Positions 3,371-25,015 are shown, numbered from the whole stretch's first letter. The stretch: 63,932 nucleotides of DNA, filler included, from Corallochytrium limacisporum Hawaii (GCA_002811645.1; 5 parts of 5 records of this genome joined end to end with filler, not necessarily neighbours in it), one strand, 5' to 3'. Notes: generated from the letters alone by a model not told the origin. A program made the numbers and translations.

Positions 3371-4705
3371 ATGTACTGTCATTTCCTGAATATTCCCCTT
3401 GCCGCCACTATGTTGGTTCATATGGCCCATGCTGTACCGACGAGCTTCGCAAAAGAACAGATGGAGCTTCCAGCATCTGTAAATGAAGATCTTGGTTTCG
3501 GATCTTGCTATCCTGCCAGTGATTCCTGTACTAACGAACTCTTGAAGAAAGGTTACTACTACGACCCTGCTGGCATCTATGCTTTGCAAACTGGTACATG
3601 CAACACTACTCCTATCGCTATAAAACTGGTTGAGGAGAAAAACAACCTTGAAACTTATATTCTGAAGTACATTGGTAACTTCATCTGGCAGGGCCACGGT
3701 ATGACTGCCAACGACAAGTCCTGGTGGTCCGCCATGTTCAAGTTCACCAGTATCTTCGGTCCGCTCCTGCAGGCTCCATTTTTCGACAAGTCTATCTCTG
3801 TCTCTGATCTCTCCGACTACCGTGAAGAGCTTGCCAACGTGCTAACCGGAATGTCCCCCGATGAATGGCCCTGCGCCACCAATGCGACTGGCCAGGTTGA
3901 TAAGGTGCCATATTACATTTCCCTTGGACTGCACAACGGCGCCTTCCTGCCGAGTCCTGAGCCAACTCAGGTGCAGACCAATTGGTGGACCCTTGACTAC
4001 ACGTACCAGCCGGTTGATTTGCAGTACGCACCTAACGGCAACAATTCGCCCGAATGTGATTCTAAGAAAATCGCTTACTCCCAGAGTGTGACCAATACGA
4101 CGTCAATTTCGACCACTGATACGATCTCCAATGGCTACGAGTATTCGGAAGAGTTTAAGGTCTCTGCATCAGTCGAAGGATCCTTGTACGGAATGGACGT
4201 TGGCCTTGAGGCTTCCCTCACATCTAGCTTCACCGAAAGTGTGCAAACCACGTACAGTACCACCACCAACCAGGAGCTCAGTACCACCACCCAGGTGACC
4301 CACGATGTTTGTGCCCACCTGCCACCGGAGTCGTTCACCAATGTCACTCAGTTCGTACAGCAGATCCACGCCACTGTAGGTTACACCAATGATGTCCAAT
4401 ATGAGCAAGAGATCGAAGTTGTACCGTACGTATCCACAGTCGGTGTCAATAATCACCACACTACTCTACGAGAAGTTATTGCTCTAGTCAACAAGGCGGC
4501 GGGTTTGCTCGGTGTTGACCTCTCTGACATGTTCCAGAACGTCATCACCACTGCAAGCGTCACAGGCAAATACAAGGGCAAGCAGGGTCTCCAGGTCTCC
4601 GTTGACATTAACAGTTGCAGTGCCGCTGATGTCAACAGGTCCTGCACCCCTGAGGAGGCGCTTTTGTACCCACCTTCGTACCGTGCACAATGTGGAAGCT
4701 GTTAG
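3371..4705 (+). CDS. Secreted ETX/MTX2-type (aerolysin-fold) beta-pore-forming toxin-like protein
   Basis: Signal-peptide-like N-terminus; Ser/Thr-rich tracts (SQSVTNTTSISTTDTIS; TTYSTTTNQELSTTTQ) flanking an alternating amphipathic hairpin (EEFKVSASVEGSLYGMDVGLEASLTSSF), then LPPESFTNVTQ and a distal TGKYKG strand, the typical ETX/MTX2 layout. Confidence 0.75.
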   Translation: MYCHFLNIPLAATMLVHMAHAVPTSFAKEQMELPASVNEDLGFGSCYPASDSCTNELLKKGYYYDPAGIYALQTGTCNTTPIAIKLVEEKNNLETYILKYIGNFIWQGHGMTANDKSWWSAMFKFTSIFGPLLQAPFFDKSISVSDLSDYREELANVLTGMSPDEWPCATNATGQVDKVPYYISLGLHNGAFLPSPEPTQVQTNWWTLDYTYQPVDLQYAPNGNNSPECDSKKIAYSQSVTNTTSISTTDTISNGYEYSEEFKVSASVEGSLYGMDVGLEASLTSSFTESVQTTYSTTTNQELSTTTQVTHDVCAHLPPESFTNVTQFVQQIHATVGYTNDVQYEQEIEVVPYVSTVGVNNHHTTLREVIALVNKAAGLLGVDLSDMFQNVITTASVTGKYKGKQGLQVSVDINSCSAADVNRSCTPEEALLYPPSYRAQCGSC

Positions 4706-5454: not shown

Positions 5455-8400
5455 TCACAGGGAATCGCATTCGGTTGACTCTGAAACTGGCATGACGCGA
5501 TTTGTGCGGTATCGTTGGTTCACGTCAAATGCAGCATAAATGATCAGAAGTGTAGGTAAGGCCACAAGGTATATGGCATCGTATGGAAGATCCACGGTGC
5601 CGTAACCTAGAGGGCTATAAGTGAAGATTCCGGTTGTCAGCCAACAGTGGAATGCACCCATGACCCGCTCGTCGCAACCTATGGAGGAAGGATAGAGAAT
5701 CATCTGGGCGGTCATGCGCATACCCATAGCGTACGGGTTCAGCCGGAGGATGACTACTGAGAATATGGGGCCGAAGGCAGCCACGGGTATAAGACCACCC
5801 GAACATGCAAAGCACAAGATGAGGACAACGGTCACTGCCGCGAGCCAATTATACGGTCTCGCCCGGCCGCCAATAATTGCGATCATGGTGGAAAATGTAA
5901 ACATTCCACACAACCAGATGGCGGCCATAATCGACAGAGTGGGTACCGCTTCATAGTGCGGCAACGAGCTTGTCGCCAAGAAGAACGGAATGGCTCCGGC
6001 ATATACGGACAAAGCGATGGCTACACTTTCACGATGGATCAGGCCGGCAATAAATCGCATGAGGGTCATGTCCCCTTTGATACTCTCAGCTGCGTACTTG
6101 GGGAGGTGAAGTCGGAACATATTCGTAAATTGGCGGATTATCAGGCTGCAGGCAGCAGCAGTGGTGACCATCAAGATTAGTGAAGGCATAAATGCCATAG
6201 CCTTCTCCAAGGAGGTCAGTGTCCCGCCCAAGAAAATGAGCCCAAGACCTATTCCAGTGATAAGAGAAACGAAAAGTGGCAGAAACATGAATGCAAGACT
6301 CTCCACTCTGATCATCTCGTACTGCTCCAGAGAGTAGCGACACAACCATGAAATCGCTCCTGTTTCAGATGACACACTTCGTGTTTGCTTTGTACTGCTG
6401 CCCTTTTGGCCAGACCCAGTCACTTTCGAACCATCGCTGTTCCTTTCCAAGTCAATAAGTACAACTGTGCCATGTCTTCCGGTTGTGTCATGCTCTGAAC
6501 CCCTCCCAGACGTTTCGAGAGTCTGTTGTGTCCACGACAATGATGTCTTTTGTCCCATTATAGACCCTGGTACTGACAAGGAGGGTGAAGTTCTTCCCTC
6601 TACCAATGAGTTCTGCAAGCAAGCTCCGCTGTTCATCTCCTCGGCTGCGTCCAGGGCATCAACATTCAGAATGTCATGGCAAGTTGAATTGAACCTGAGT
6701 AGGGGTACGGTTTGTGAATTTTGCAAACAATCAAGGATAGCATCCGCTGGAGCGCGTTTGAACCGGTTGATCATGAGCTCCAAGGAAGAAGATTGTGACG
6801 GTGAAGCTGAGACTAAAGTCCCACTCAAGGCGCTTGCACTGCCGGAATCGTCGGTGTCTACAGAGTTCGCGGCCTGCAGGGCCACATTCTCGTAGTACAG
6901 AGTAGTATGCTTACGGCAGCCTGTAAAGTCAATATATCCATCTCGCATAATCATGAGGCGGTCAAATAGTTGATATATCTCATCTCGGGGCTGATGTACT
7001 ACAACAAGAACAATGCAGTTGCGCGTTCGAGCAATGTGGCGCAGGCGCAGAGCTAGTGAAAGCGCACTACTCGCATCCAGTGCCGAAGTTGGTTCATCAA
7101 GAACGAGTACTTTTGGCTGCTTGAGCAGCTCTTTGGCCACTGCAAGCCGCTTGGCTTCACCACCGGAAAGGCGCTCCACTGGTGTATCCAAAACGTCAAT
7201 GAGGCCCATTTCCGCAGCTAACCTATGAAGGTGGTTGACAGCTAGCGGCCCCTCACAGGACTGCCCAATGTTGGGATAACAGCGCAGGTGAGCATGCACG
7301 AGGGTCTCCCGGACTGTCAGCGTCGGGATCAGGTACTCCTGCTGGCGCACGTACCCAGTCATGGCTTGTAAATCCGGCTGCGATATGGAGTGAAAGCTTT
7401 GACAGCCGTACCATATGGCACCAGACTGCTGCAGTCTACGTGATGTCAGATGACCGATTAAAGTTTTGAGCAAGGTGGTCTTTCCGCAGCCTGACGGTCC
7501 AAGTATGGCGGTCATCTGTCCTGGCTCGACAGAGCCGCTAATGCCGTTCAGAATAGTCTTATGAGGCCGCTTGCCTCTTTCAGCTTCGTTCACAGTAGAT
7601 GTCACGTGCTGCATGACAGACACCTTAGGGTCTTTGAATGTAACTGTCATTGCGTCATGGGTAAACACCGCAGGAGGACAATCAAATTTGGATTCAATTT
7701 GCACGGGAACCATCCGATTCTGGTCAATTTTCCGTCGTAAGAACGGGCCTACCAGCAATGAGTGCAAAATTCTGTGGTACCACGCAGTGTTAACATATCG
7801 CACATTTTCAGCAGCTAGGTTTATCTTTCTGTCGTTGTTGGCCAAGACGGTGGGCGGTGCGAGTAAAAGCTCTTGCCATAAATGGGTGACACCTCTTACC
7901 ATGGTATAGCCGAAGAGCACTAGCAAAGCTAAAGTCATGGTCATGAGGCTTACGATACTGAGAAAGATGTAGGCGAAGAGTGTGAAGCCTAAGCTGTTGT
8001 TGTCGACATTCCAGGCGGGTCCAGTGATATCGGCTAGGTAGTATGGGCATGTTGGATTACATTCCATCATATGACAGGTGTCTTGAACCGACTGGATGTC
8101 CTGTGCGTAGCTTAGGTCGGAGTTCATGACTGCCAAAGACCATGCTCCAACGGAACTGAGCCATTTGCTGAAGAAATTTCGTGCTGTTATCTCCTCAACA
8201 ACCTGACCGTCAGTGTCACGATACTGCACTGCGAAATCCGAGGGAAGGCCGAGTCTGATCGTTTTCTCCCGCTCCGCGACAATGTCAGCGTCGTAGAAGA
8301 GGTTGAGAATAATTTCCTGACTATTAGCAGACATCGGGCTTAGCACATGACTTGCGCATGACGCCTGAAAAACGTAGTAGGGCGCAGGTAGTTCGGATGA

Positions 8401-8466
8401 AACTTCGTTCTCGATATGAGCAAGATGTAAACTACGTTCGATTTTGCGCAAGATAATGTCACGCAC
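5455..8466 (-). CDS. ABCG-family half transporter with an extra N-terminal TM helix; 3' part of an esterase-ABCG fusion
   Basis: Walker A GPSGCGKT, Q-loop GYVRQ, signature LSGGE, Walker B VLVLDEPT, H-loop VVHQP, C-terminal ~6-TM domain; the frame opens with GTG directly after TAA 8467-8469 and its first ~140 aa are the C-terminus of a pectin-acetylesterase/Notum domain (FQASCASH, CNPTCP). Confidence 0.9.
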   Translation of the reverse strand: MRDIILRKIERSLHLAHIENEVSSELPAPYYVFQASCASHVLSPMSANSQEIILNLFYDADIVAEREKTIRLGLPSDFAVQYRDTDGQVVEEITARNFFSKWLSSVGAWSLAVMNSDLSYAQDIQSVQDTCHMMECNPTCPYYLADITGPAWNVDNNSLGFTLFAYIFLSIVSLMTMTLALLVLFGYTMVRGVTHLWQELLLAPPTVLANNDRKINLAAENVRYVNTAWYHRILHSLLVGPFLRRKIDQNRMVPVQIESKFDCPPAVFTHDAMTVTFKDPKVSVMQHVTSTVNEAERGKRPHKTILNGISGSVEPGQMTAILGPSGCGKTTLLKTLIGHLTSRRLQQSGAIWYGCQSFHSISQPDLQAMTGYVRQQEYLIPTLTVRETLVHAHLRCYPNIGQSCEGPLAVNHLHRLAAEMGLIDVLDTPVERLSGGEAKRLAVAKELLKQPKVLVLDEPTSALDASSALSLALRLRHIARTRNCIVLVVVHQPRDEIYQLFDRLMIMRDGYIDFTGCRKHTTLYYENVALQAANSVDTDDSGSASALSGTLVSASPSQSSSLELMINRFKRAPADAILDCLQNSQTVPLLRFNSTCHDILNVDALDAAEEMNSGACLQNSLVEGRTSPSLSVPGSIMGQKTSLSWTQQTLETSGRGSEHDTTGRHGTVVLIDLERNSDGSKVTGSGQKGSSTKQTRSVSSETGAISWLCRYSLEQYEMIRVESLAFMFLPLFVSLITGIGLGLIFLGGTLTSLEKAMAFMPSLILMVTTAAACSLIIRQFTNMFRLHLPKYAAESIKGDMTLMRFIAGLIHRESVAIALSVYAGAIPFFLATSSLPHYEAVPTLSIMAAIWLCGMFTFSTMIAIIGGRARPYNWLAAVTVVLILCFACSGGLIPVAAFGPIFSVVILRLNPYAMGMRMTAQMILYPSSIGCDERVMGAFHCWLTTGIFTYSPLGYGTVDLPYDAIYLVALPTLLIIYAAFDVNQRYRTNRVMPVSESTECDSL

Positions 8467-9498
8467 TTATCCATCCTGGGTGTTGAAAAGCTGTAAGGCC
8501 TGTGCAGCCGTTCCATCAGTGCCAATGCTGGCACTGTGAAAGTCATTGCGATTGCTCCCCTCAGGATTGCGCCCAAGTTTCTCCTTTGCATACATTTCCA
8601 GGTATACAAAGTTCTGGAATGTGTCAAAGCGGCTCTGAAGCACAAATATCGGATGTGACTGTTCAAGGAGCGAAATCATGTACTCTTGTTCGATACATTC
8701 GCTACCATAACTATCTTCGGACGCAGTCTGTTGGCACGACATTTTGAATCCAACCATGTTTAGAAAGGGATCTATAAGTTCCGTCATGCCACGGTAGCCT
8801 GGGGCAAGGTCATTTTGATCCAGCGAGGGAAGTTTGGAGTCGAGAAAGTCGCCGGAATCGAGATACAAGGCCACTTTGTGGCCTTGCAGCACAGGATTTT
8901 TGGCATGGTTCATGGCTCCGATTGCACCAGCAGACGATCCAGCCAGTAGAATCCTGGTGTCGCTGTCATCGATGTTGCTGGCGCCCACTGCGTCGTATGC
9001 CAGCCGAAGGGCCGTCGTCACAAGGTTTTGCCCACCAAAGTACCGTGTCTGACCATTGTCGCCCTCGTACGTTGTGTTACCTAAGAAAAAGTCCTGCGTA
9101 CAGTAGGGAACCGAAATATGCAAGCAGCAGAACAGGTCTGGGTTTTCATCCACATTGCCACTTAGCAACCATGACACGTTATGGACGGACTCAAACTCCG
9201 CACTGGATGTCAAGTCACGGTAATTGGGGTCGGCGAGAGTCGACTCGCATTCCTCCTTGTCGTAGCAGGCACCGCCTGAATTCAGATACACAACAGCACA
9301 GTTTGGCACTGTTCCAGCTTTCTCAAATACTGCCAAATCATGGAAAAGGGCAGCTTGCGAACCGTCCAAGCAGTGTGACTCCGAGGCAAACTCCCTCGTG
9401 AGCTGCCAGACACTACCTACATTCGATGACAAAAGTGGGTTTGTGGATGTACATACCGTGTTGAGCATGGTTTTCAGCCCACATCCATTCTTAGTCAC
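8467..9498 (-). CDS. Pectin acetylesterase/Notum-family alpha/beta hydrolase domain, cut by an in-frame TAA before the catalytic His; possible pseudogene
   Basis: YLNSGGAC (oxyanion loop), VPYCTQDFFLG, LLAGSSAGAIG (nucleophile), SRFDTFQ (catalytic Asp); first in-frame ATG at 9468 and no intact signal peptide. Confidence 0.8.
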   Translation of the reverse strand: MTKNGCGLKTMLNTVCTSTNPLLSSNVGSVWQLTREFASESHCLDGSQAALFHDLAVFEKAGTVPNCAVVYLNSGGACYDKEECESTLADPNYRDLTSSAEFESVHNVSWLLSGNVDENPDLFCCLHISVPYCTQDFFLGNTTYEGDNGQTRYFGGQNLVTTALRLAYDAVGASNIDDSDTRILLAGSSAGAIGAMNHAKNPVLQGHKVALYLDSGDFLDSKLPSLDQNDLAPGYRGMTELIDPFLNMVGFKMSCQQTASEDSYGSECIEQEYMISLLEQSHPIFVLQSRFDTFQNFVYLEMYAKEKLGRNPEGSNRNDFHSASIGTDGTAAQALQLFNTQDG

Positions 9499-11918
9499 AT
9501 GAACTTAGCTTTGTTGACGAATTTGTGTGTTTCAGGGGCTGGGCATGATGTCTTGTCCATGGATCGCTGTCTAGTTTTGCATTGGGAACGACCACTATCA
9601 ATGTTTCATAGATCTTAAGTAGCTCCCTCCGATGTGCGGATATAAGTCACTCATCTAGAAGTGTCAGATGCTCTATCAGACCTGTCTAGACATGTCTGTA
9701 ATCACGACTTGAGTCAATCCCGAGCATCGTCGGTCTTGATGCCCACAAGCCATATCTACCGATGTGGTTTCAATCCTTTCCCCTCCGCTCTCTCTTTCCC
9801 CGCCCCGGGGGGGAGACCCGGAAGGCAGGGAGGGTTGCGGTGCGGGGCAAACCCCGGCGACTTCTCAATTGTTTGACCAAGGAAAAAGGCCGCCCGTCTG
9901 TGTCATAGGGTCTCCCGCTGGTGATTGTCGGTGATGGGATCATCTCGGCTTATTCCACTCCGCCGTCTTACCATTGCTGGCGAGAGATTAGTACACGGTT
10001 GAGGAGAGAATTCACCAAATCGGCACTCACTCTTGCTCAGTGGCTAGATCGTTTGATCTTTTCGTACTCGTGTGGCGGACTGACCACCGTACTGAAAATG
10101 ACGGGGGCCCAGCCCGGACATCGTCTTGAGAATATTTACTCTCGACTGAGCCGATATATATCGTTCAAGGAAATTGGATACTCTCTGTACGATCTAGTAC
10201 TGCTCATTTATACTAATGTTTGTTGTTTATATGTATGGTACGGTGGTACTAAGCACCGCGCCCACTGGTTCTACAAAGCGCGAAAAAAACATTACGTGTC
10301 GTGCCTCTCTCAACAAGCTTCACCTAATGAACCTGAACAGTGCTGGCTCATGTTTGGCAAGTGGCGATTTTGCAATGATGTTTGTACCGTTTACTGAGCT
10401 GCCTACTTATCTTGTGCTTCCTCCTCCTCAACGGCTTTGAGGGTCCCAATCTTGGTTTTCTTCACTGTGACGCCATACTATGAGCGGGTAGTTCCACTAC
10501 CGGAATATACCAGGTTCTTGGTGGGATTGTTGTGACATACAACTGGCGCAATAAGGCACATGCGGTTTTAAGACCAGAGTGAGGTCGAGCTTTTCGTCGG
10601 ACAAAATGTGTTTGGCCGGGGAAGGTACACTCAGTGGGTGGTGGGCAATTGTGCAAAAACCTCAACGGGAGAGTGCAAGGGTACATTTTCCTAATTTGAA
10701 TCTGACGGAAGCAGTCGACGGAGATGAACATCATCAATTGAAGAAGTCTTCATCTGCAAGAATGATCTGGGGAGAGTTGCAAATAATGGCTGAACCCTCC
10801 CGAATTCATCACTTCGTCGTAGAGGTACTGGTGAACACTCCGAATTTGTTGGCTACAGTACTGAACAAATCTTTTTAGAACTTACGCAATGGTACGAGGA
10901 GTCCACCCGAAATCTCTCGCCAAGAGCAGCTCGCGGATCCTAAGATGAGGCGTAGGAGACCAAAAAAGAAAACACCCTCCCACCAGATATCAATTGTTCT
11001 TATGTGTCCAGGAAATTGTAGTGGGCTCTAGTGGGCTGTAGGTATCACAGAAGCACTTGATGGTACTATGAGCCCCTGTTTTCCGCTAAACACTTGCTCC
11101 GTACCTGGTCGTGTACCTGTGGGTCAACCCCCGCCCAAACACTTTGACTCGTTGCCGAATCTACCAACACAGAAAAGATTTACATTTGGCTGTATGCTAT
11201 GATAGCTTGCGCTACTACGCAGAGCTTGTGCGAATATGCATTGAGTTTGTCGATTTCCTTGTTTGCTTCCTCATGTTGTGCGGGTCGCAGAAGCGCATCA
11301 GAAAGTGCCACCTCTCCTTCCCATGCGTTGAGCTTTTTTGACTATGTTACTGTACCACATCGGAATTAGCGGTGATAACGGATCCTTCCCATACCCAACT
11401 CCTCGGACTTGTGAGAGTACCGGATCAGCCCCTCGCACACAATTGCCATCTACTTTTGCAAATCTATTTATCTCTTTGAGCCGACGGGCAGTGATTGCCA
11501 CTGAAGCCATAGGAACTGAAAATCTGCGGTGCTATGACACGTACAGGGCCCTGTATTTGACCATTTTCAATCACGCAGCGTTCACACTCGTGCGCATTCT
11601 TGGGTCACACACCAGCCCCGGATAAGTCTGCTCACCGCTAGTTACCAAATGAGAGATTGTGGCTTCTCAGGGATGGCGAAAAATCGACGCCGTTTATTTC
11701 AAAATCTTCCGACGCGAAAAGCATCTGCAGCATTTCGTTTGCTTGCTCAGGTCCTGATTTCGCACCGTTCATATAGGTTGCTACAAGGGGCCTGATGTAT
11801 GCTCATGTTATCGCCAGATCGCCCCAGTAAAATACTCAACTATGCGCCTGTTCAGCAGCACGATTACTCAGTGCGCATAAAATTAGAGTCGATCATGCTC
11901 GTGCCTCCAACATCCGGT

Positions 11919-12884
11919 TCAATAACTCCCATTGATGTCTAAGTCATTGCCCTTGAGCACACGATCTTCGTTGTAGCAAAGCGCACCGCTTTGAAGCCGC
12001 TGGACCCCTTTGGTTTGATTCAACTGCCAGACTGTGCGAGTAAAGTACCAGACTGTGATATTTTCTGAGAACATGGTTCGCGAACTCCTGGAAAACTGAG
12101 AAACCCCACTACAGTCTCCAAAGTCCAGGTCACAGACTCCACCACTCTTGACGGTAATGGTATTGTCGTGATAGTTTTGGCACCAAACACCGCCCTCGAA
12201 GGTTTCTGTCCCCTCAGCATCCTCGAGGTGATTGTTGATTCCAAAAGGTGGAGTTGTGTTGATTGGCTCAAACCAGTCAGGGTCAGCACAGAACCAGTGG
12301 ATGTCATAAGAAACCTCGAGAGGCTCGTCGTCGGTGTTGAAGATCCTGCAAGTCACATCACGACCGGCTACAGGAGTACAGACCATTGGAAGCTTCCGGC
12401 GATGGTGTTTGTCTTCATTCTTACCATGTTTAACTCGAACCACTCCTTCCGCAATTTCGCTAGCCATGTGACCTGGGTACTCACAATCACCGGTGGGAAC
12501 AATGATGGTGTGAAAGGAATTGGCTGCGATGGTGACATCTTCACTTGTCTCCATTACGGACACTTCTGGACGGCCATATTTGTGTCGATCTTCAAACACA
12601 TCATTGTCCACACAAATGAACCTCATGTCAATATCAAGAGGGCGTTCAAGCGGCTCACTGATGTCGATTACAACGCCGCCGGTGCGACTGCTCTCGTCGC
12701 GGTCCACGTATGCTCCTGAGATCATAGGTCCAAGATACTCAGCATCGTTGACACCAGCAGAGGCCGTCCACAATGAGGTTTTCCAAGGACATTTGGACTC
12801 AAAAACTCTCTGACCGACAGTACCAGCAGAGAGCGTGACGCTGCCCATATGGTAAGACAAATCAACTTGAGGAACGGGAATCAT
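11919..12884 (-). CDS. Protein with three ~100-aa beta-rich repeats; probably a 5'-eroded gene or pseudogene
   Basis: Repeats begin GSVTLSAG / EDVTIAAN / NTITVKSG and end LDIDMRFIC / YDIHWFC / LDINGSY*TGC; a decayed further repeat lies upstream (about 12945-13065). Confidence 0.6.
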   Translation of the reverse strand: MIPVPQVDLSYHMGSVTLSAGTVGQRVFESKCPWKTSLWTASAGVNDAEYLGPMISGAYVDRDESSRTGGVVIDISEPLERPLDIDMRFICVDNDVFEDRHKYGRPEVSVMETSEDVTIAANSFHTIIVPTGDCEYPGHMASEIAEGVVRVKHGKNEDKHHRRKLPMVCTPVAGRDVTCRIFNTDDEPLEVSYDIHWFCADPDWFEPINTTPPFGINNHLEDAEGTETFEGGVWCQNYHDNTITVKSGGVCDLDFGDCSGVSQFSRSSRTMFSENITVWYFTRTVWQLNQTKGVQRLQSGALCYNEDRVLKGNDLDINGSY

Positions 12885-15059
12885 GATGAGGTAAAATTAT
12901 ACGGGAACGGGGTCATACGTCTTGGGTTGTGGGTGAGGACAGATCACGGAACAGATTCCCTATGAGTGCTAACATTAAATAGTTTGAAGGCACATATGCA
13001 ATCCCATAGGAGCAGAAACTTGATACGCTCATCGCCGTTGCGGCCAAAGGAAGTCCTTACTGAAGTCTTCCATGAGGCACACGTCTTGCCGACCACGAAC
13101 GGCAAGATTATCGCAACCAATCAAAGTTCCACACCATGTGTATTAGTCAAACATGGGACTTGAGTGCCTAGAGATTGTGACCAGTACTAGCATGAAGGAT
13201 ACTCAATCATGCGGACCATTCTGAGCCAGTTTCACCAGGGTTCAAAACACCGAAGTACTTCTGGCTTCCCACCATCCGCACCCTCTGTCTCCTCTTCTCC
13301 GCGCCGACCACCCGGTGGGGAGTGGTTGCGGTTCGCCTGACGTGCAGTAGCCCTAAGATTGCGGACCAGATGGAGCCCGCATACAATGATGCAAATGACT
13401 GATCTTAGGCACAACCACCTTCCCTGTTCATAGGATGGAAAAATGAGAAGAGAGCCTGCAGTACTTTCGGTACTGGTACTGTAGGTTCCGTATCACCTTC
13501 GGCTGGGATTCTTCATTTTTTATGAATGGGCTGCAAATCACAGAAGCGAATGATATGGACAACAACAGTGACGAAAACTAAAGTCCGCGTGTATCGCAGG
13601 GAGGTCAGCACAGTACTCTATCCCATGTCCTCGCAGTTTGTACCCCACCCGTTATGGAGGATTTCTTCCGGTATTTTCAATTGTGTGTCGGCGGACAAAC
13701 TATGGCCTCGCAATACATGCTATTCCCATATTTGTTTTCACATTATTCATGGTGGGCCAGGATGGTCATCCTTTGGACGACCATTATCGGCTTTCAGCAG
13801 ATTCTGCTTGCTGACTACCAAGAATGTGCTGGTTATAGGCAGCCGTCTACGAATTCGTCATTAGCCCATAACCGAAAGATAGTTCCAAACACGCATTGTG
13901 TGATGGACACGTGTGGGGAACTGTGAAAACAGAGGTGCTTCGCAATGTCCAACTTCAGCAGTCGAACTCCCTTGTCCTACTGGGAGATACCAGTTGTACT
14001 GAAAACCCACGCGCACGGGCGCGGGCGTGCAGACTCATCGAACCCTCAGTCAGTATCAAAGCAATGTGCACCGGGAAAAGTGTCCTACCGTGGACAGAGG
14101 GAGCTAGAGGGAAGAACGCACGTTTCCGTCATGCGGAGAGAGACACATACAGAGATGGACTTAGAGTTCGCTAGGATGCACCAAAGTCCGTCTCTCGTAA
14201 TGCCCCCGGTCCACCTCTCGGTACAACACTATCATGAAACGCTGCTCTGAGAGGAGTCACAACGATATCACGGTCATTGCCCTTAATGGCTCGTCATAGA
14301 TAGCCGTATCAGAACGGCAATGGCAGCAACGGTGGACACAAACGTGAGGGGAATTCACTGACAGAGAGACTTCCACGCTGCCCACTTGGTCAGTCCAGTA
14401 CAGAGATCTTTTCCCGATTTCCAGAGGCATCACCGGGAAATGTGAGCTCGCAGAAACACGGGTGCATTGAGAGCTGTCCTCCAAATGGGTCTCGGTGTAT
14501 ACTCTTGTTGTACGGAGTGAAGCATTGCAGATCAAGGCTTGACAACGCTTTGGTGCTCTCCTGGACGACTTCAACTTCCGACAAGGAGATAAATCTTCGT
14601 CGGTCGTGCGATGGCCACCGTTCTGATTGTACTGCCCATCAAGGCTACCATCGATGACGCTCTGATTGCTTTGCAACCTGGCCATATTGGAGTGCAATGG
14701 AGTGTAATTGATGTTGCCGTAATGAGCACAGCTCAAGGTGCACACATCACTGGCACGTATGACGTCTGTGGTCATCAGAAAGGGATAACCTTCTTCTTTA
14801 ACTACAACAAACACACACACACACACAAAGTGAGAGAGAGAGAGAGATGCAATCTGTCCTGGCCTGGGTCTATTGCGTGGACATGCGGCGCCCCAGAGCG
14901 ACGCGATGGTAGCATGGTGAGTCGTCCTATTGTATGGTGATTCGGAAACTTCTATAAAGATAGTATCTGGAAAGAGCTGAGGCTTTTCATGCATTGTGGC
15001 CGACCAGGGGAAAAAAGGGTGAGTACGGGAAGTCTAATTGTATACTACTGGCTTTGAAG

Positions 15060-15135
15060 GAATAGTTTGCCAGTCTCTGGCTATGAAAGAATAGTCTGCC
15101 AGTCTCTGGCTATGGAAGAATAGTCTGCCAGTCTC
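15060..15135. repeat. 29-bp tandem repeat, about 2.6 copies
   Basis: gaatagt(t/c)tgccagtctctggctatg(a/g)aa repeated, just 3' of the PhyH-family stop codon. Confidence 0.9.
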
Positions 15136-15160: not shown

Positions 15161-16153
15161 TTAGATCTTGGACTGACGCACAGAGTAGGTAGCGCCTTGC
15201 GACTGCTTGAGGTATTCGCCAGCACCGTGCTTCTTCAGGGAGTTCAACGGATGATACCCAGCGACGTGTCCCATGAATGGAGGAATGACGCTGTATCCAA
15301 GAAGTCCCTTCACGCGCGGGCTCATGCCCAAGACATGTTCAGGGTCATTTGACAGAACAAATTGTTCTTGCTGGCGAAGGTAAGGTTGACAATACTGGTT
15401 GGACAAACCCAGGCGGGGAGCATCACTGTTATTGGCACCACCAGCGTGCCAGAGGGTGCCAACAAAGAGTACCACGCTACCGGGCTTCATGACAGCTTTG
15501 ACAATACGAGCATCGTGTACAGTGTTGTCCATGTTCTTGCCCTCGTTTTCGGGATTTTCACTGCCATGTCGGAAGTCAACAGCGTTCACGGCGACGCCAG
15601 GGGGCATTTGGCTGCCCCATCGGTGGCTGCCGGGGTAGACGACAGTGGCACCGTTGTTCTCAGTAAACTCATCAATGGCCCATACAGTAGCAATGGACAT
15701 AGGCGGGCGAGGACGGTTCAGGGGGTAGAAACCGTCGTCAAAGTGTAAGGGTTGCTGCTTCTCTCCTGGCATGATTTGAATGGCCAGACTGGCACTCAGA
15801 AGGTAGCCGGGGTCCATGAAGCCATCGAAGACACCCAGGACCTTGGGATGCTCGGCAATATCTTCCAAAATCTTGCCCTGACCGACGCAGTTGTAGATGC
15901 GCTTGGTCGCATGTCCCTCAAAAGTGTTGCGACCCCCCTCCAGAGCGTTCAGGCGGGGATCGACTGCGCTGCGTACTGCGTGAATCTGATCAGGAGTCAA
16001 GGCATCCTCAATGATAACATAACCATCCTCGAAGAGTTTCTTGGCATTGCGAGTATTTTCCTCGCCCTTAATACGGTCCCATGCCACGTAATCCAGGTGG
16101 CTCACACTGACCGTGGCATGTTCCTTCTTGCCTTTTTCGTAAAGAGACGACAT
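15161..16153 (-). CDS. Phytanoyl-CoA dioxygenase (PhyH) family Fe(II)/2-oxoglutarate dioxygenase
   Basis: HxD motif QPLHFDD, ENNGATVVYPGSHRW, LWHAGGAN with distal His, SDAPR Arg; C-terminal SKI. Confidence 0.92.
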   Translation of the reverse strand: MSSLYEKGKKEHATVSVSHLDYVAWDRIKGEENTRNAKKLFEDGYVIIEDALTPDQIHAVRSAVDPRLNALEGGRNTFEGHATKRIYNCVGQGKILEDIAEHPKVLGVFDGFMDPGYLLSASLAIQIMPGEKQQPLHFDDGFYPLNRPRPPMSIATVWAIDEFTENNGATVVYPGSHRWGSQMPPGVAVNAVDFRHGSENPENEGKNMDNTVHDARIVKAVMKPGSVVLFVGTLWHAGGANNSDAPRLGLSNQYCQPYLRQQEQFVLSNDPEHVLGMSPRVKGLLGYSVIPPFMGHVAGYHPLNSLKKHGAGEYLKQSQGATYSVRQSKI

Positions 16154-19619: not shown

Positions 19620-21398
19620 GGTTGCCGTTTTCAATGTATCCGCTATTCTCTTCTAATATCCTGTACCACACTACACCATATGGACCTCGTGTCAAGTACA
19701 AGAGCAGAAGATCCAGTGCTCAGTGTCAAGTACCTTGCTTCCAAGACCTCAAACGAGCTCCATGAGCAGCCGGTTCATCGTGTGAATGCAACGCTTTGCT
19801 TCTGCGTTGGTTTCTTCACTCTTGCAGGAACCAACCGTGCAGATGTGCACATTCGGTGTCTCACACATATTTTTCACTCTGGTGTCTTTCATAGAGACTC
19901 GGAGTCCGTCACCCGACCCGAGTCCACAGTGTTGTGTGGGTGTACCCAGTCACTCGGCGGCGGGCGGGTGATGGCTACATTGATGGTAGCCAGTAAAATT
20001 TGACGGTAGCTTAGGGAACACGGGTCCATTCTTCACTCTTTTGACTCGGCAGCATCGTCATCCCGGTCGATGGAATGTCGATCCGGTATAGTTGAACACG
20101 CCCGGGACGTGTGCACAGAGAACTGTCGCCTAACCATGGGAATCCAATTTCTCATTTTCTTTAGGCTGCCCAAACGCAGCTGCTGATACGCTTGGCTGCC
20201 CCTGCCCCAAATGGCCAGTGGGCAAAGTGGCTGTCTTACTGTGAGAGAGCGAAGCGTCCGCCGGTGGTGTGTGCCGAATATTAGGGTCTGAAAACGGCCG
20301 CCTCTTCGAAAGACCACCTACCCTGCGGCGCCCGTTTGGTTTTCCAGCCTGAAAAAATATTCTTCGCTTCTTCTCCCTTCCTTTCATCGCTTTTTTTTTC
20401 TCTCGCATTCTGGAAAGTACTCCCAAAGGCCCCCGGGGTGCCCCGCAACCGAAGCCAATTCCCTTACTGAACGAACTGAAAAAAATATTTTGTTGTGGAC
20501 GAAAGGGTGGCTGCGTATTGCTCCTGCTCCCTCCCGGCCCCACCCCCCCCGGGGGGGGGGAGGGTATTTTTTGCCGGCTCGCAGAGAGACTCCCGTTGCG
20601 TACGCGCCGTGGAAGCAGAGCCCCTCGTCGCCGAAGGGGGGGGGGGGGCAGGCAGGCTTGAGAGGCCACTTGGGGGGGGATAGCCGAGGCGCAGAAGGGA
20701 TCGGGCAGGGGGGGGTCCGAACGGGCACCGCAAACTTTACTTACCCCACCCAACCCAACCCAGGATATTTGATATACCTTTATTAGCATCTTCAAAAACA
20801 GTGATTTCATCCGAATTCAAATATATTCTTTGATTCGAAGCAGCTAAATATAGGCAAACAAGAATGTAAACTATTGAAAACTTGAAATATTGTTGTTGCA
20901 GACGAGGGACACCCACAGGCTGTTTTGCTTGGCTTTGGGCCCAAAGGCTTTCAATTGGTTGGGGGGGAGGGAGGGGTTGGAGGGGAGAGCGGGCGGTGTT
21001 TTGGTTGTCCCCTTATACACCGCCAGTGAATCGGGGTCGGCCAAGGGTGAAAATTAGTTGGGAAGGAGGTACGGGGCTGGGGGGGGGACCGCTGGTCAAA
21101 GTGTGAGGTTTCCCATTGTTTTGCCTTTTGTTCGCTCTGTTACCTCTTGGGTGCCTTACTTTGCAACGGGGGTTGAGCAAAACGGAGGACCCGCGGGAGG
21201 GGGCAGGGGGGATGGGGGTGAGTGTGCGTAACAAAAGAAAAGGAAGTAGGGTTTAAACCAAGGGCTTCCCGCGGGTTGACTGCGTTAGGATAGGATACAC
21301 ACACGCACACACCAGGGTCGTGGAGAGGGGAGAGAATCCTGGGCGAAATAGATGTAGTGCAACTGGCTCGGGTCACAATAGGCAAAGCCTGGAGAAAA

Positions 21399-22813: not shown

Positions 22814-25015
22814 CTATAGGTAGTAGATACGACTCTGAATCAAGAGCGCAGACGCGGCCACCATCATATTCGACGCCATGACCGAAAACAGGACGGTCCA
22901 GAGCCCGACGTTGACAAAGGTGGTGCGGAAGATAACCACCCACTCAGCATAGGTGCCCGGATAGAACCTCCTGATGTACAACAAACCCAGGTATCCGGTC
23001 ACGGTCATGAACGGAATCATAACCGCGGCAAAGATCAGAGAGTTCCTGACCTGCTCGTCAGTGTACACGTCAAAGTTGTCAACGTCTGTCTTAAGGTTGA
23101 CTTCGGCGAGGATTGCCGATTGTTCGTCAACATTGTCCTCCTGCACAAACGGAAACAGAATCTCATTGTCACCGTAGCGGAGAGACAGAGAAATGACAAT
23201 GTAAAACACAAAGGCTGAGATCTGACTGAGAATCTTGAGCATGTAGAAACGTGCCTGCCGCCGACGGTAGCCAGGGATCTGGTAGCTGTGGCCAGAGTCT
23301 GTGGGATCATTGTCCATGGTAACCACTTTGACGCTGGTGTCAAACATTTTCTCACCATGGCCCCACGCAATGCACAGACGCTTCAGCCAGACGCGGATGT
23401 GGAACCAGAACTCAGTAAGGAAGAACAGGTAGGCCATTTGCTCCAGGGCGCGCAGGGCGGCGAGCAGGAAGAACGTACCCGTAGGGTCTTCCACAACGGG
23501 AAAGACGAGAACCTGGAACACATCCTCAACGCTTTCGAGCCAGAAACCGGAGATAATCATTTGCACTTCAATGGGCAAGGGATCACCCAGGGCCAGCAAG
23601 ATGGCCTTGAAGATGAACAGCACAAAGACTAGGACAATAGACAGGAACCGCTGACCGGTGGCGTCCAGCTCCCGAAACACGAATATATACCCGTACATGA
23701 CAAAGACGAAGATCGTGACAGTCAAAATGTTGATGCAGAACCAAAGGTGCATTCGCTTGAAGTAGTTCTCGTTACAGACCCAGGTGAAGTGCCTGCAGAA
23801 GTAAAGGCAAAAGAGGGTAGTTGTCGGGATTAGGATCATTGACAGTCCACCCTGCAGTGTTATCGACTGGTTGCGGTTGGACATGATGGGCAGCAAAACC
23901 ACCACCTGCACTGCCGCGTTCACAAACAGAATCCAGACCCATTCCCGGAAAGGCCGCCACGGAGTGCGTGGATCAAGGGTGCCGATGAACACCACAATGA
24001 GTCCGTATGACAGTACAATGGAAATCAAGGGATTCAGGACCAGCAGGTAGATTAGGTGATCGTTCAGTGACTCACTTACCGGTTCGCCGATGTCAACACC
24101 GCCGTAAAACAAAGCAACTAAACCCCCGGGAATCAGGGACATAAACAAGACAAAGAACACCGGACCCAGCCGGTGGTGGCTCAGATGCACCAAGAAGCGC
24201 TCCATGGCCTGTACAATTACTGCGTGGCAGTGAGAGCGGGCGGGAGGCATCTCTTCCGTGTCTGTGACTTTGATCATCGGTGTGTCAGTTTCACGGCGGG
24301 TCGGTGAGTCCTGGCTCGGAGTACCCAATGTGTTCTGGCCGTCCTCAGCAATGGACAATTGGCTAAGCGGTGTGATGTTCTGGCTTGGTTCGCTACTGTT
24401 GCTTGCCCTGGGAGATCCATTCTTTAATGCCGTGCCTTCCTCGCTCTTAGGCTGTCCCGACACGCTCGACCTTTGACTCCTGTGAAAGACGGAGTGGGCC
24501 AACTGCGAGAGAGTCCGCGGTGTCCTACGTTTTGACATGAGCGTGTACTTGACCACCGCGGGACATACGTACGTGGGGTCGCCCAGGGCTGGGCATTCGG
24601 GACAGCAGGCGGACACAGCCCGCCCGCTGCAGACTGCGGACACGGCACCGCCACCGGTTAGCAGGATTGCCAACTGCTCCTTGCTATAGACAGAGAACAG
24701 ATCTCCCGGTTCCCCATTGGGTCCCGCAGGTACTGTTAGCACCATGTCTTTGTCCACATTGCCACACTGCAGGGTCTGGCCCGGGGTCTGGCTCGGAGTC
24801 TGGCCCGGAGTATGCTCGAGCGGTGCTCTCTCGTCATGTTCTGAAGTTGCTGCAGTTATTTCGATCACTGTCCCCGGGGACCGCTCGTTGAGGTCAGTCA
24901 TTTCAGCTTCGTCTATGTCGTCGGCGACAGCTAGATTAATGCTCGCCAGCGTAGTTGTCGGGGCCATGGGAGGATGGTCTCCTCTATGGGAGTCGTCCCA
25001 GTGCTCGTCAGACAT
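22814..25015 (-). CDS. Multi-pass membrane protein of unknown function (733 aa)
   Basis: Long ORF with ATG; ~280-aa disordered N-terminus containing a Cys cluster (CCPECP), then about 10-12 hydrophobic helices. Confidence 0.85.
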   Translation of the reverse strand: MSDEHWDDSHRGDHPPMAPTTTLASINLAVADDIDEAEMTDLNERSPGTVIEITAATSEHDERAPLEHTPGQTPSQTPGQTLQCGNVDKDMVLTVPAGPNGEPGDLFSVYSKEQLAILLTGGGAVSAVCSGRAVSACCPECPALGDPTYVCPAVVKYTLMSKRRTPRTLSQLAHSVFHRSQRSSVSGQPKSEEGTALKNGSPRASNSSEPSQNITPLSQLSIAEDGQNTLGTPSQDSPTRRETDTPMIKVTDTEEMPPARSHCHAVIVQAMERFLVHLSHHRLGPVFFVLFMSLIPGGLVALFYGGVDIGEPVSESLNDHLIYLLVLNPLISIVLSYGLIVVFIGTLDPRTPWRPFREWVWILFVNAAVQVVVLLPIMSNRNQSITLQGGLSMILIPTTTLFCLYFCRHFTWVCNENYFKRMHLWFCINILTVTIFVFVMYGYIFVFRELDATGQRFLSIVLVFVLFIFKAILLALGDPLPIEVQMIISGFWLESVEDVFQVLVFPVVEDPTGTFFLLAALRALEQMAYLFFLTEFWFHIRVWLKRLCIAWGHGEKMFDTSVKVVTMDNDPTDSGHSYQIPGYRRRQARFYMLKILSQISAFVFYIVISLSLRYGDNEILFPFVQEDNVDEQSAILAEVNLKTDVDNFDVYTDEQVRNSLIFAAVMIPFMTVTGYLGLLYIRRFYPGTYAEWVVIFRTTFVNVGLWTVLFSVMASNMMVAASALLIQSRIYYL

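Follow-up and report, generated by a model that had tools for sequence, protein, structure and literature searches.

A conserved esterase–ABCG transporter fusion, probably inactivated recently in Corallochytrium limacisporum and annotated there as two genes

Two neighbouring genes in the annotated genome of Corallochytrium limacisporum Hawaii are, on our reading, the halves of one. The stretch we analysed, called the window throughout, is 63,932 nucleotides of DNA from assembly GCA_002811645.1 (parts of five records of the genome joined end to end with filler), and the locus lies at positions 5455–9498, on the minus strand. An esterase of the PAE/Notum type is here followed by a single transmembrane (TM) helix and an ABCG-type transporter, and the frame that encodes all three is broken by one in-frame TAA. 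We consider it probable (about 0.6) that this is a recently inactivated single copy of a conserved ecto-esterase–ABCG fusion, either a pseudogene of recent date or a null allele, perhaps one that appeared in culture, and that it has been annotated as two genes. The case is built on homology that runs straight through the stop, on a family of uninterrupted proteins with the same architecture in other eukaryotes, and on a second defect, the missing signal peptide, at the other end of the esterase.

One gene in two frames

Two open reading frames (ORFs) follow one another in the same frame: ORF1, of 343 codons (9498–8470), and ORF2, of 1003 codons (8466–5458), which runs to the gene's own terminal stop at 5455–5457. 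The only thing between them is a TAA at 8469–8467 (...CAG GAT GGA TAA GTG CGT GAC...), with G as the next base. It is the sole interruption in 1346 codons, and there is no frameshift. The public annotation makes two proteins of the locus, one of 333 amino acids from Met11 of ORF1 (9466–9468) to the TAA, the other of 959 amino acids from Met45 of ORF2 (8332–8334), which is already past the catalytic His. The initial annotation, drawn up from the sequence alone, had described ORFs of 343 and 1003 amino acids abutting around the stop, with the esterase Ser and Asp ahead of it and the His, CNPTC, TM helix, nucleotide-binding domain (NBD) and transmembrane domain (TMD) behind. The frame coordinates agree with that description, and the motifs lie where it had placed them.

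ORF1 is recognized by the Pfam PAE model (PF03283) with 93.6 bits against a cut-off of 26.6 (E 1.7e-26), over model positions 19–261 of 355, and it matches Notum structures at E 1e-8. The region concerned, the N-terminal two thirds of the PAE/Notum domain (8596–9387), is also picked out by the family profile described below. It carries CLDGS (9358–9372), VPYCTQD (9091–9111) and GSSAG (ORF1 residues 187–191, 8926–8940), in which Ser189, the predicted nucleophile, falls in the Ser column of the fused homologues; the predicted acid, Asp292 of SRFDTF (residues 289–294, 8617–8634), likewise falls in their Asp column. A variable loop and the first half of a conserved helix block (8470–8595), coding-like in the gene's frame, lead up to the stop. 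Beyond it comes the C-terminal third of the esterase (8047–8466), recovered by the family profile, BLASTP and tblastn. It holds the rest of the helix block, the motif FQASCASH (ORF2 residues 33–40, 8347–8370) and the terminal CNPTC (residues 136–140, 8047–8061), a family motif that stands just before the TM helix. The predicted catalytic His is residue 40 of ORF2 and aligns with the family's SCxxH. Since it lies 40 codons past the TAA, the 343-residue product as encoded would be without it. Nor is there a spare: a profile search of 286 contigs (24,109,830 bases) found one PAE locus only, with the same match ending at model position 261–262, so the genome has no intact paralogue.

The transporter part is equally complete. 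A TM helix at ORF2 residues ~161–187 (7906–7986; hydropathy peak 2.55 at residues 157–190) aligns with TM segments of the homologues and is followed by an NBD (Pfam ABC_tran at residues 306–461, 7084–7551, E 1.4e-30) with its Walker A (7474–7500), signature (7147–7170), Walker B (7084–7110) and H-loop (6988–7005) motifs. A long Ser-rich linker (6361–6990) connects the NBD to six hydrophobic helices (residues 718–983), which form an ABCG-type TMD at 5503–6360; an NBD that precedes its TMD is the ABCG order. The Pfam model ABC2_membrane (PF01061) found nothing in ORF2 even at E up to 10, and a family TMD profile gave the window's TMD 3.9 bits where shuffled sequences reached 4.7, which is not significant. 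The TMD is too divergent in sequence for either model; the Pfam match is missing as well from the Lithocolla protein introduced below and from one of the Seminavis proteins.

Structure prediction bridges that gap. An AlphaFold model of the C-terminal 713 residues (mean pLDDT, the program's per-residue confidence, 64.9; about 90 in the NBD and 55–85 in the TMD) was compared with known structures by Foldseek, and the best 50 PDB matches were all ABCG half-transporters (ABCG25, G2, G5/G8, G1 and G16), aligned over some 700 columns with a TM-score by target of 0.60–0.73 and E down to 3.5e-19. The prediction confirms the ABCG (type V exporter) fold for these residues, with the caveat that ABCG relatives were present in the model's input alignment. 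The solved half-transporters (AtABCG25, ABCG2, ABCG5/G8, ABCG1) share the NBD-then-TMD order and the predicted fold with the window protein; in contrast to it they have neither an ectodomain nor an extra N-terminal TM helix, and their identity to it is 15–21%.

A family of fused proteins

A search with the transporter part led to two proteins of Chara braunii, CBR_g50640 and CBR_g19325 (1262 and 1407 amino acids), each with PAE, ABC_tran and ABC2_membrane domains; the N-terminus of CBR_g19325 also bears a piece of reverse transcriptase. The same architecture was found in Lithocolla globosa (EP00732_P000723, 1220 amino acids, a complete ORF from a transcript and the best fused match to the esterase piece), in Seminavis robusta (CAB9500321.1 and CAB9525697.1, 1429 and 1087 amino acids), and in the sponge Halichondria panicea, where XP_064391159.1 (1505 amino acids) has all three domains. 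A metagenomic protein in ENA (979 amino acids) combines PAE with ABC_tran, and further metagenomic proteins share the architecture. These homologues came from the NBD search and from an exhaustive HMMER search with the esterase piece, which gathered 748 PAE relatives; ORF1 and ORF2 residues 1–290, used as queries in word-index searches of proteins, returned only the window's own proteins. An NBD is present in 13 of 149 representatives of the nearest PAE clusters, and the Halichondria protein belongs to one of the clusters so represented.

In a tree of PAE domains, 13 of the 15 fused proteins fall within one group of 19 rows, and the window sits inside a nine-row group (support 99) with the fused Lithocolla protein and a protein we carry as P0157; this is a FastTree tree with long branches and is indicative only. 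The plan common to the family is a signal peptide, the esterase, C(N)P(T)C, a TM helix, the NBD and the TMD. Fused homologues and window have in common the domain order, the topology, the GxSxG Ser, the Asp, the SCxxH His, C(N)P(T)C and the ABCG NBD and TMD. They differ in that the homologues are uninterrupted models; in the window copy a TAA stands between Asp and His, and the signal peptide is absent. Sequence identity is only 26–34%. To judge from these sequences, the PAE–TM–ABCG fusion is a real and conserved eukaryotic family, uncharacterized in the databases. A full-text search of the literature found no description of a PAE–ABC fusion.

The initial annotation had proposed that one ancestral gene of about 1350 amino acids encoded an ecto-deacylase and a transporter together, and had called for a search for orthologues; the intact proteins of the same architecture in other eukaryotes lend that proposal good support. 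It had also known of no ABCG protein with a hydrolase. Such proteins were already deposited as uncharacterized, and the architecture is not unique to Corallochytrium.

How does the fusion compare with what is familiar? Notum, a palmitoleoyl-protein carboxylesterase, and the plant pectin acetylesterases are likewise Cys-rich α/β-hydrolases with a Ser-Asp-His triad, secreted or extracellular. They are soluble secreted enzymes, whereas here the domain is tethered through a TM helix to an ABC transporter, and the C-terminal third of the window's esterase is, unlike theirs, too divergent for the Pfam PAE model. Among transporters, a close parallel is yeast Adp1, an ABCG half-transporter whose N-terminus carries an EGF-like ectodomain and one additional TM helix. 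Its plan of signal peptide, ectodomain, single TM helix and ABCG-type NBD and TMD is the same, but its ectodomain is EGF-like and non-catalytic where the window's is a predicted hydrolase.

The exhaustive search also turned up PAE domains in other company. P0298, an ENA metagenome protein of 2169 amino acids, combines AMP-binding, PP-binding, an FSH1 serine hydrolase and PAE in one chain, and in P0150 a PAE domain is joined to fasciclin domains.

Homology runs through the stop

The initial annotation had suggested looking for the PAE domain beyond the TAA with a hidden Markov model, and the answer depends on the model. Pfam PAE stops before the TAA and has no match in ORF2 even at E 10. A family profile built from five fused ectodomains does cross it. 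ORF1 matches positions 63–309 of this profile with 124.9 bits, and the N-terminus of ORF2, with the His motif, CNPTC and the TM helix, matches positions 365–503 with 17.6 bits; the read-through translation, with X at the stop, is a single domain at positions 63–502 with 139.9 bits. Against 1000 shuffles the second piece scored 15.6 bits (ORF2 residues 1–150; shuffles at most 5.1) and 19.4 bits (shuffles at most 8.0). When all six frames of the whole window were scanned with the profile, only chunks of the esterase–ABCG frame scored.

Pairwise comparison gives the same picture. With tblastn, residues 26–721 of the Lithocolla protein align with 9417–6937 in one frame, as a single alignment that passes through the TAA (E 3e-53), and its colinearity with the window extends over 2.5 kb. 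With BLASTP, the alignment to the Chara protein begins at ORF2 residue 94, takes in CNPTC and continues into the NBD. The esterase–ABCG signal across the two frames is far beyond chance. A PDB sequence search with the N-terminus of ORF2, an ESM Atlas search and an Rfam scan of the window found nothing.

The stop itself sits gap-free in a conserved block in the alignment with 14 fused homologues, directly behind the [YF]-G-[GSA] turn typical of the family. In this column the homologues' residue is A, E, L, S, Q or W, and a single substitution can turn a codon for E, Q, S or L into TAA. The initial annotation had taken the TAA for a recent nonsense mutation, an error or a recoding site in an ancestral gene, and that reading is supported.

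A missing leader

The stop is one of two defects. The initial annotation had remarked that the signal peptide was missing, and so it is: ORF1 contains no hydrophobic segment, and the 2.5 kb upstream of it hold no convincing signal-peptide exon. The 42 residues that precede CLDGS have no hydrophobic core and noncoding-like codon usage, and the 5' end of the open frame upstream of the start of homology (9400–9498), which includes the annotated start, has a codon score of -6.9 over 33 codons. An in-frame stop lies upstream of ORF1 at 9507–9505. In the relatives whose N-termini we read, 10 of 10 have a hydrophobic leader, either 25–60 residues before CxDG or at the very N-terminus.

Two observations on this end of the locus are recorded for completeness. 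A perfect GTATGT follows the fourth codon past Met11, and a GTAG or AG lies 40–44 nucleotides further on (9456–9413, minus strand); an intron here would be out of frame and too short, and the match is probably a coincidence. At ~9800–9900, upstream of the esterase frame, there is G/C-rich low-complexity sequence that resembles two doubtful ORFs elsewhere in the window.

What the stop is

Could the cell still make a whole protein from this sequence? A spliceosomal intron could remove the stop in two places without loss of frame, as a 162-nucleotide segment at 8593–8432 (GTATGC...GTAG) or a 132-nucleotide segment at 8534–8403 (GTGCCA...GAAG). The first has some appeal, because the Pfam PAE match ends exactly at its donor and because the family profile gains nothing from the intervening residues (139.9 bits joined against 124.9 and 17.6 separately). 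The 162 nucleotides nevertheless read as coding sequence. In a codon log-odds model trained to tell 57 long ORFs of this genome from its intergenic DNA, they score +12.8 in the gene's frame, where coding sequence scores 11.8 ± 8.7 and intergenic sequence -7.6 ± 6.7; only 0.5% of noncoding windows reach that value (1.0% of those with at most one stop), and the other two frames score -7.6 and -16.2. The residues on either side of the stop align without gaps with the 14 homologues, and the spacing from Asp to His is 92 in the read-through and 38 or 48 if spliced, against 58–107 in the four homologues measured. Neither candidate shows a branch-point-like motif. The genome is also a poor place to look for introns. 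C. limacisporum is reported to have undergone acute intron loss, with 0.0 introns per kb of coding sequence at conserved sites, and its splicing factors are depleted, with part of the nonsense-mediated decay (NMD) and SR-protein machinery lost (PMC5560861). Six HSP70-family genes and about nine actin-family loci that we matched are each one open frame with no internal stops, and from this and the published intron loss it follows that the code is standard and introns very rare; ATG-started ORFs of at least 120 codons make up 57% of the 245 kb of genome DNA sampled. Codon statistics, alignment, Asp–His spacing and a near-intronless genome lead us to reject the 162-nucleotide candidate, and we regard splicing of the stop in any form as the least credible of the explanations. 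The initial annotation had seen no convincing intron that would remove the stop, and can now be taken a step further, to active rejection. Programmed readthrough, or another form of recoding such as editing or a reassigned TAA, fares hardly better and strikes us as very improbable. It would fit a frame that is the same on both sides and motifs that are intact downstream. Against it stand the codon and its context: TAA is the commonest true stop (31 of the 57 long ORFs), TAAG is the second commonest genuine stop tetranucleotide (12 of 73), and a common terminator context is an unlikely place for readthrough. In eukaryotes, termination is generally most efficient at UAA with a purine as the next base. 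The HSP70 and actin genes, which lack in-frame stops, again speak for the standard code; no known readthrough motif was seen past the stop, and readthrough would leave the missing signal peptide unexplained. On this evidence the TAA looks like a nonsense codon in a sequence that is, or very recently was, translated.

There remain two explanations in which part or all of the gene is alive. The TAA may have arisen in sequencing or assembly, or it may be just one of the alleles at a heterozygous site, in a cell that has an intact fused gene of about 1346 codons. Everything else over 4 kb is intact (triad, Walker motifs, TMD), and the flanks of the stop are coding-like and conserved, all as that would predict. 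Against this, the assembly was built by SPAdes in careful mode on deep Illumina data (PMC5560861), where single-base errors should be rare; the lack of a signal peptide is a further defect, independent of the stop; and two genes were called by the public annotators as well. We judge an error or allele unlikely, though it is the strongest of the rivals. Slightly less likely again is a gene fission in progress, in which the esterase is dead and the downstream frame is still expressed from Met45 (8332–8334) as an ABCG half-transporter on its own, which keeps its extra TM helix and a short stub at the N-terminus. Its 959-residue product, which is the annotated model, would retain every ATPase motif and the ABCG-fold TMD, and since NMD is reported to be partly lost in this species (PMC5560861), an early stop would not necessarily lead to decay of the transcript. 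Neither a promoter nor a transcript supports it, and two small runs deposited under the same species label, whose RNA nature is a guess, gave no contig on the locus. The esterase frame is as intact as the downstream frame and does, if anything, better in codon score (0.124 per codon as opposed to 0.053), which argues for a recent event rather than for selective upkeep of the transporter alone.

We return, then, to recent inactivation of a single-copy fused gene. The remaining codons are open and all catalytic and ATPase motifs are intact, so the inactivation must be recent; one stop in 1346 codons, with no frameshift, leaves very little neutral time since. The codon score of the gene as a whole is 0.07 per codon, below 56 of the 57 long ORFs. 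Several points count against our reading. The low codon score may simply reflect low expression. The blank from the two runs comes from a tool that warns of false zeros. One relative, the Seminavis model P0252 (CAB9525697.1), has no obvious signal peptide, so that loss of the leader alone is no proof of death. The TAA may be a miscalled base, or the site may be heterozygous with TAA in one allele; and with no decay beyond one stop and a missing leader the locus also looks like an intact functional gene with an assembly error.

Frames that abut across a stop occur elsewhere in this genome. At four other places (L016, L025, L026 and L029; contigs C176 and C186) two or three open segments, each 150 codons or longer, follow one another in frame with a single stop in between; the similar cases at L002 and L004 fall together with HSP70 loci of the other strand. 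Runs of ORFs on one strand had suggested a kinetoplastid origin; a search for the spliced-leader pattern found none, and that origin is rejected.

What an intact protein might do

Intact members of the family have a signal peptide, a PAE-type esterase with a Ser-Asp-His triad, one TM helix, a cytosolic NBD and a six-helix ABCG membrane domain. As the NBD must be cytosolic and a single TM helix separates it from the esterase, the esterase should lie on the outer or lumenal face, directly above a half-transporter that is expected to dimerize and beside the exit of the ABCG dimer. ABCG proteins serve the export of lipids, sterols and hydrophobic precursors, and Notum/PAE enzymes strip acyl or acetyl groups from extracellular substrates. 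A lipid- or glycan-type substrate might thus be deacylated while leaving the transporter, or an external ester might be cleaved beside it. By analogy with these two families, the likeliest role of the fusion is to link export to the deacylation either of the cargo or of an ester close by. Corallochytrium could not make the esterase whole, and its downstream transporter might still come from Met45.

More speculatively, the fusion might be an ancient export-and-deacylate machine, common to sponges, nucleariids, diatoms and charophytes, that sends out an acylated lipid, sterol or glycan precursor and removes the acyl group at the exit, and that Corallochytrium has only just lost. We offer this as a tentative idea. 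Were it true, it would amount to a new mode of extracellular processing coupled to an ABC transporter, with Corallochytrium as a natural knockout.

In itself the locus would be nothing unusual, a recent pseudogene or null allele whose annotation is split in two, and the wider interest lies with the family. A catalytic Notum/PAE ectodomain joined to an ABCG transporter recurs in distant eukaryotes, one of them an animal; gene fusions usually mark functional coupling, so the family provides a testable lead on the cargo of some orphan ABCG proteins and on its extracellular processing. For the genome, there is an annotation to correct, since the 333- and 959-amino-acid models are probably halves of one disabled gene. 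The Corallochytrium copy would also serve as a natural case of lost function, in a relative of animals that can be transformed.

Other features of the window

On the plus strand, at 3371–4705, lies an ORF of 444 amino acids with a hydrophobic N-terminal leader and coding-like codon usage (0.19 per codon). Its match to Pfam ETX_MTX2, the aerolysin-type pore-formers, is borderline (22.6 bits against a cut-off of 22, E 1.1e-4), and it is possibly a β-pore-forming protein in a unicellular relative of animals. Two ORFs on the minus strand have coding-like codon usage and match no Pfam family, one of 733 amino acids with multiple TM segments (22814–25015, 0.16 per codon), the other of 321 amino acids (11919–12884, 0.10 per codon). 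Two further long ORFs on that strand, 14257–14994 and 20130–20810, are probably not genes, with codon scores of -0.06 and -0.20 per codon and low-complexity translations. Finally, a 29-nucleotide unit occurs three times in tandem at 15048–15134, its copies 86–100% identical, just downstream of a PhyH-family dioxygenase ORF (15161–16153, minus strand).

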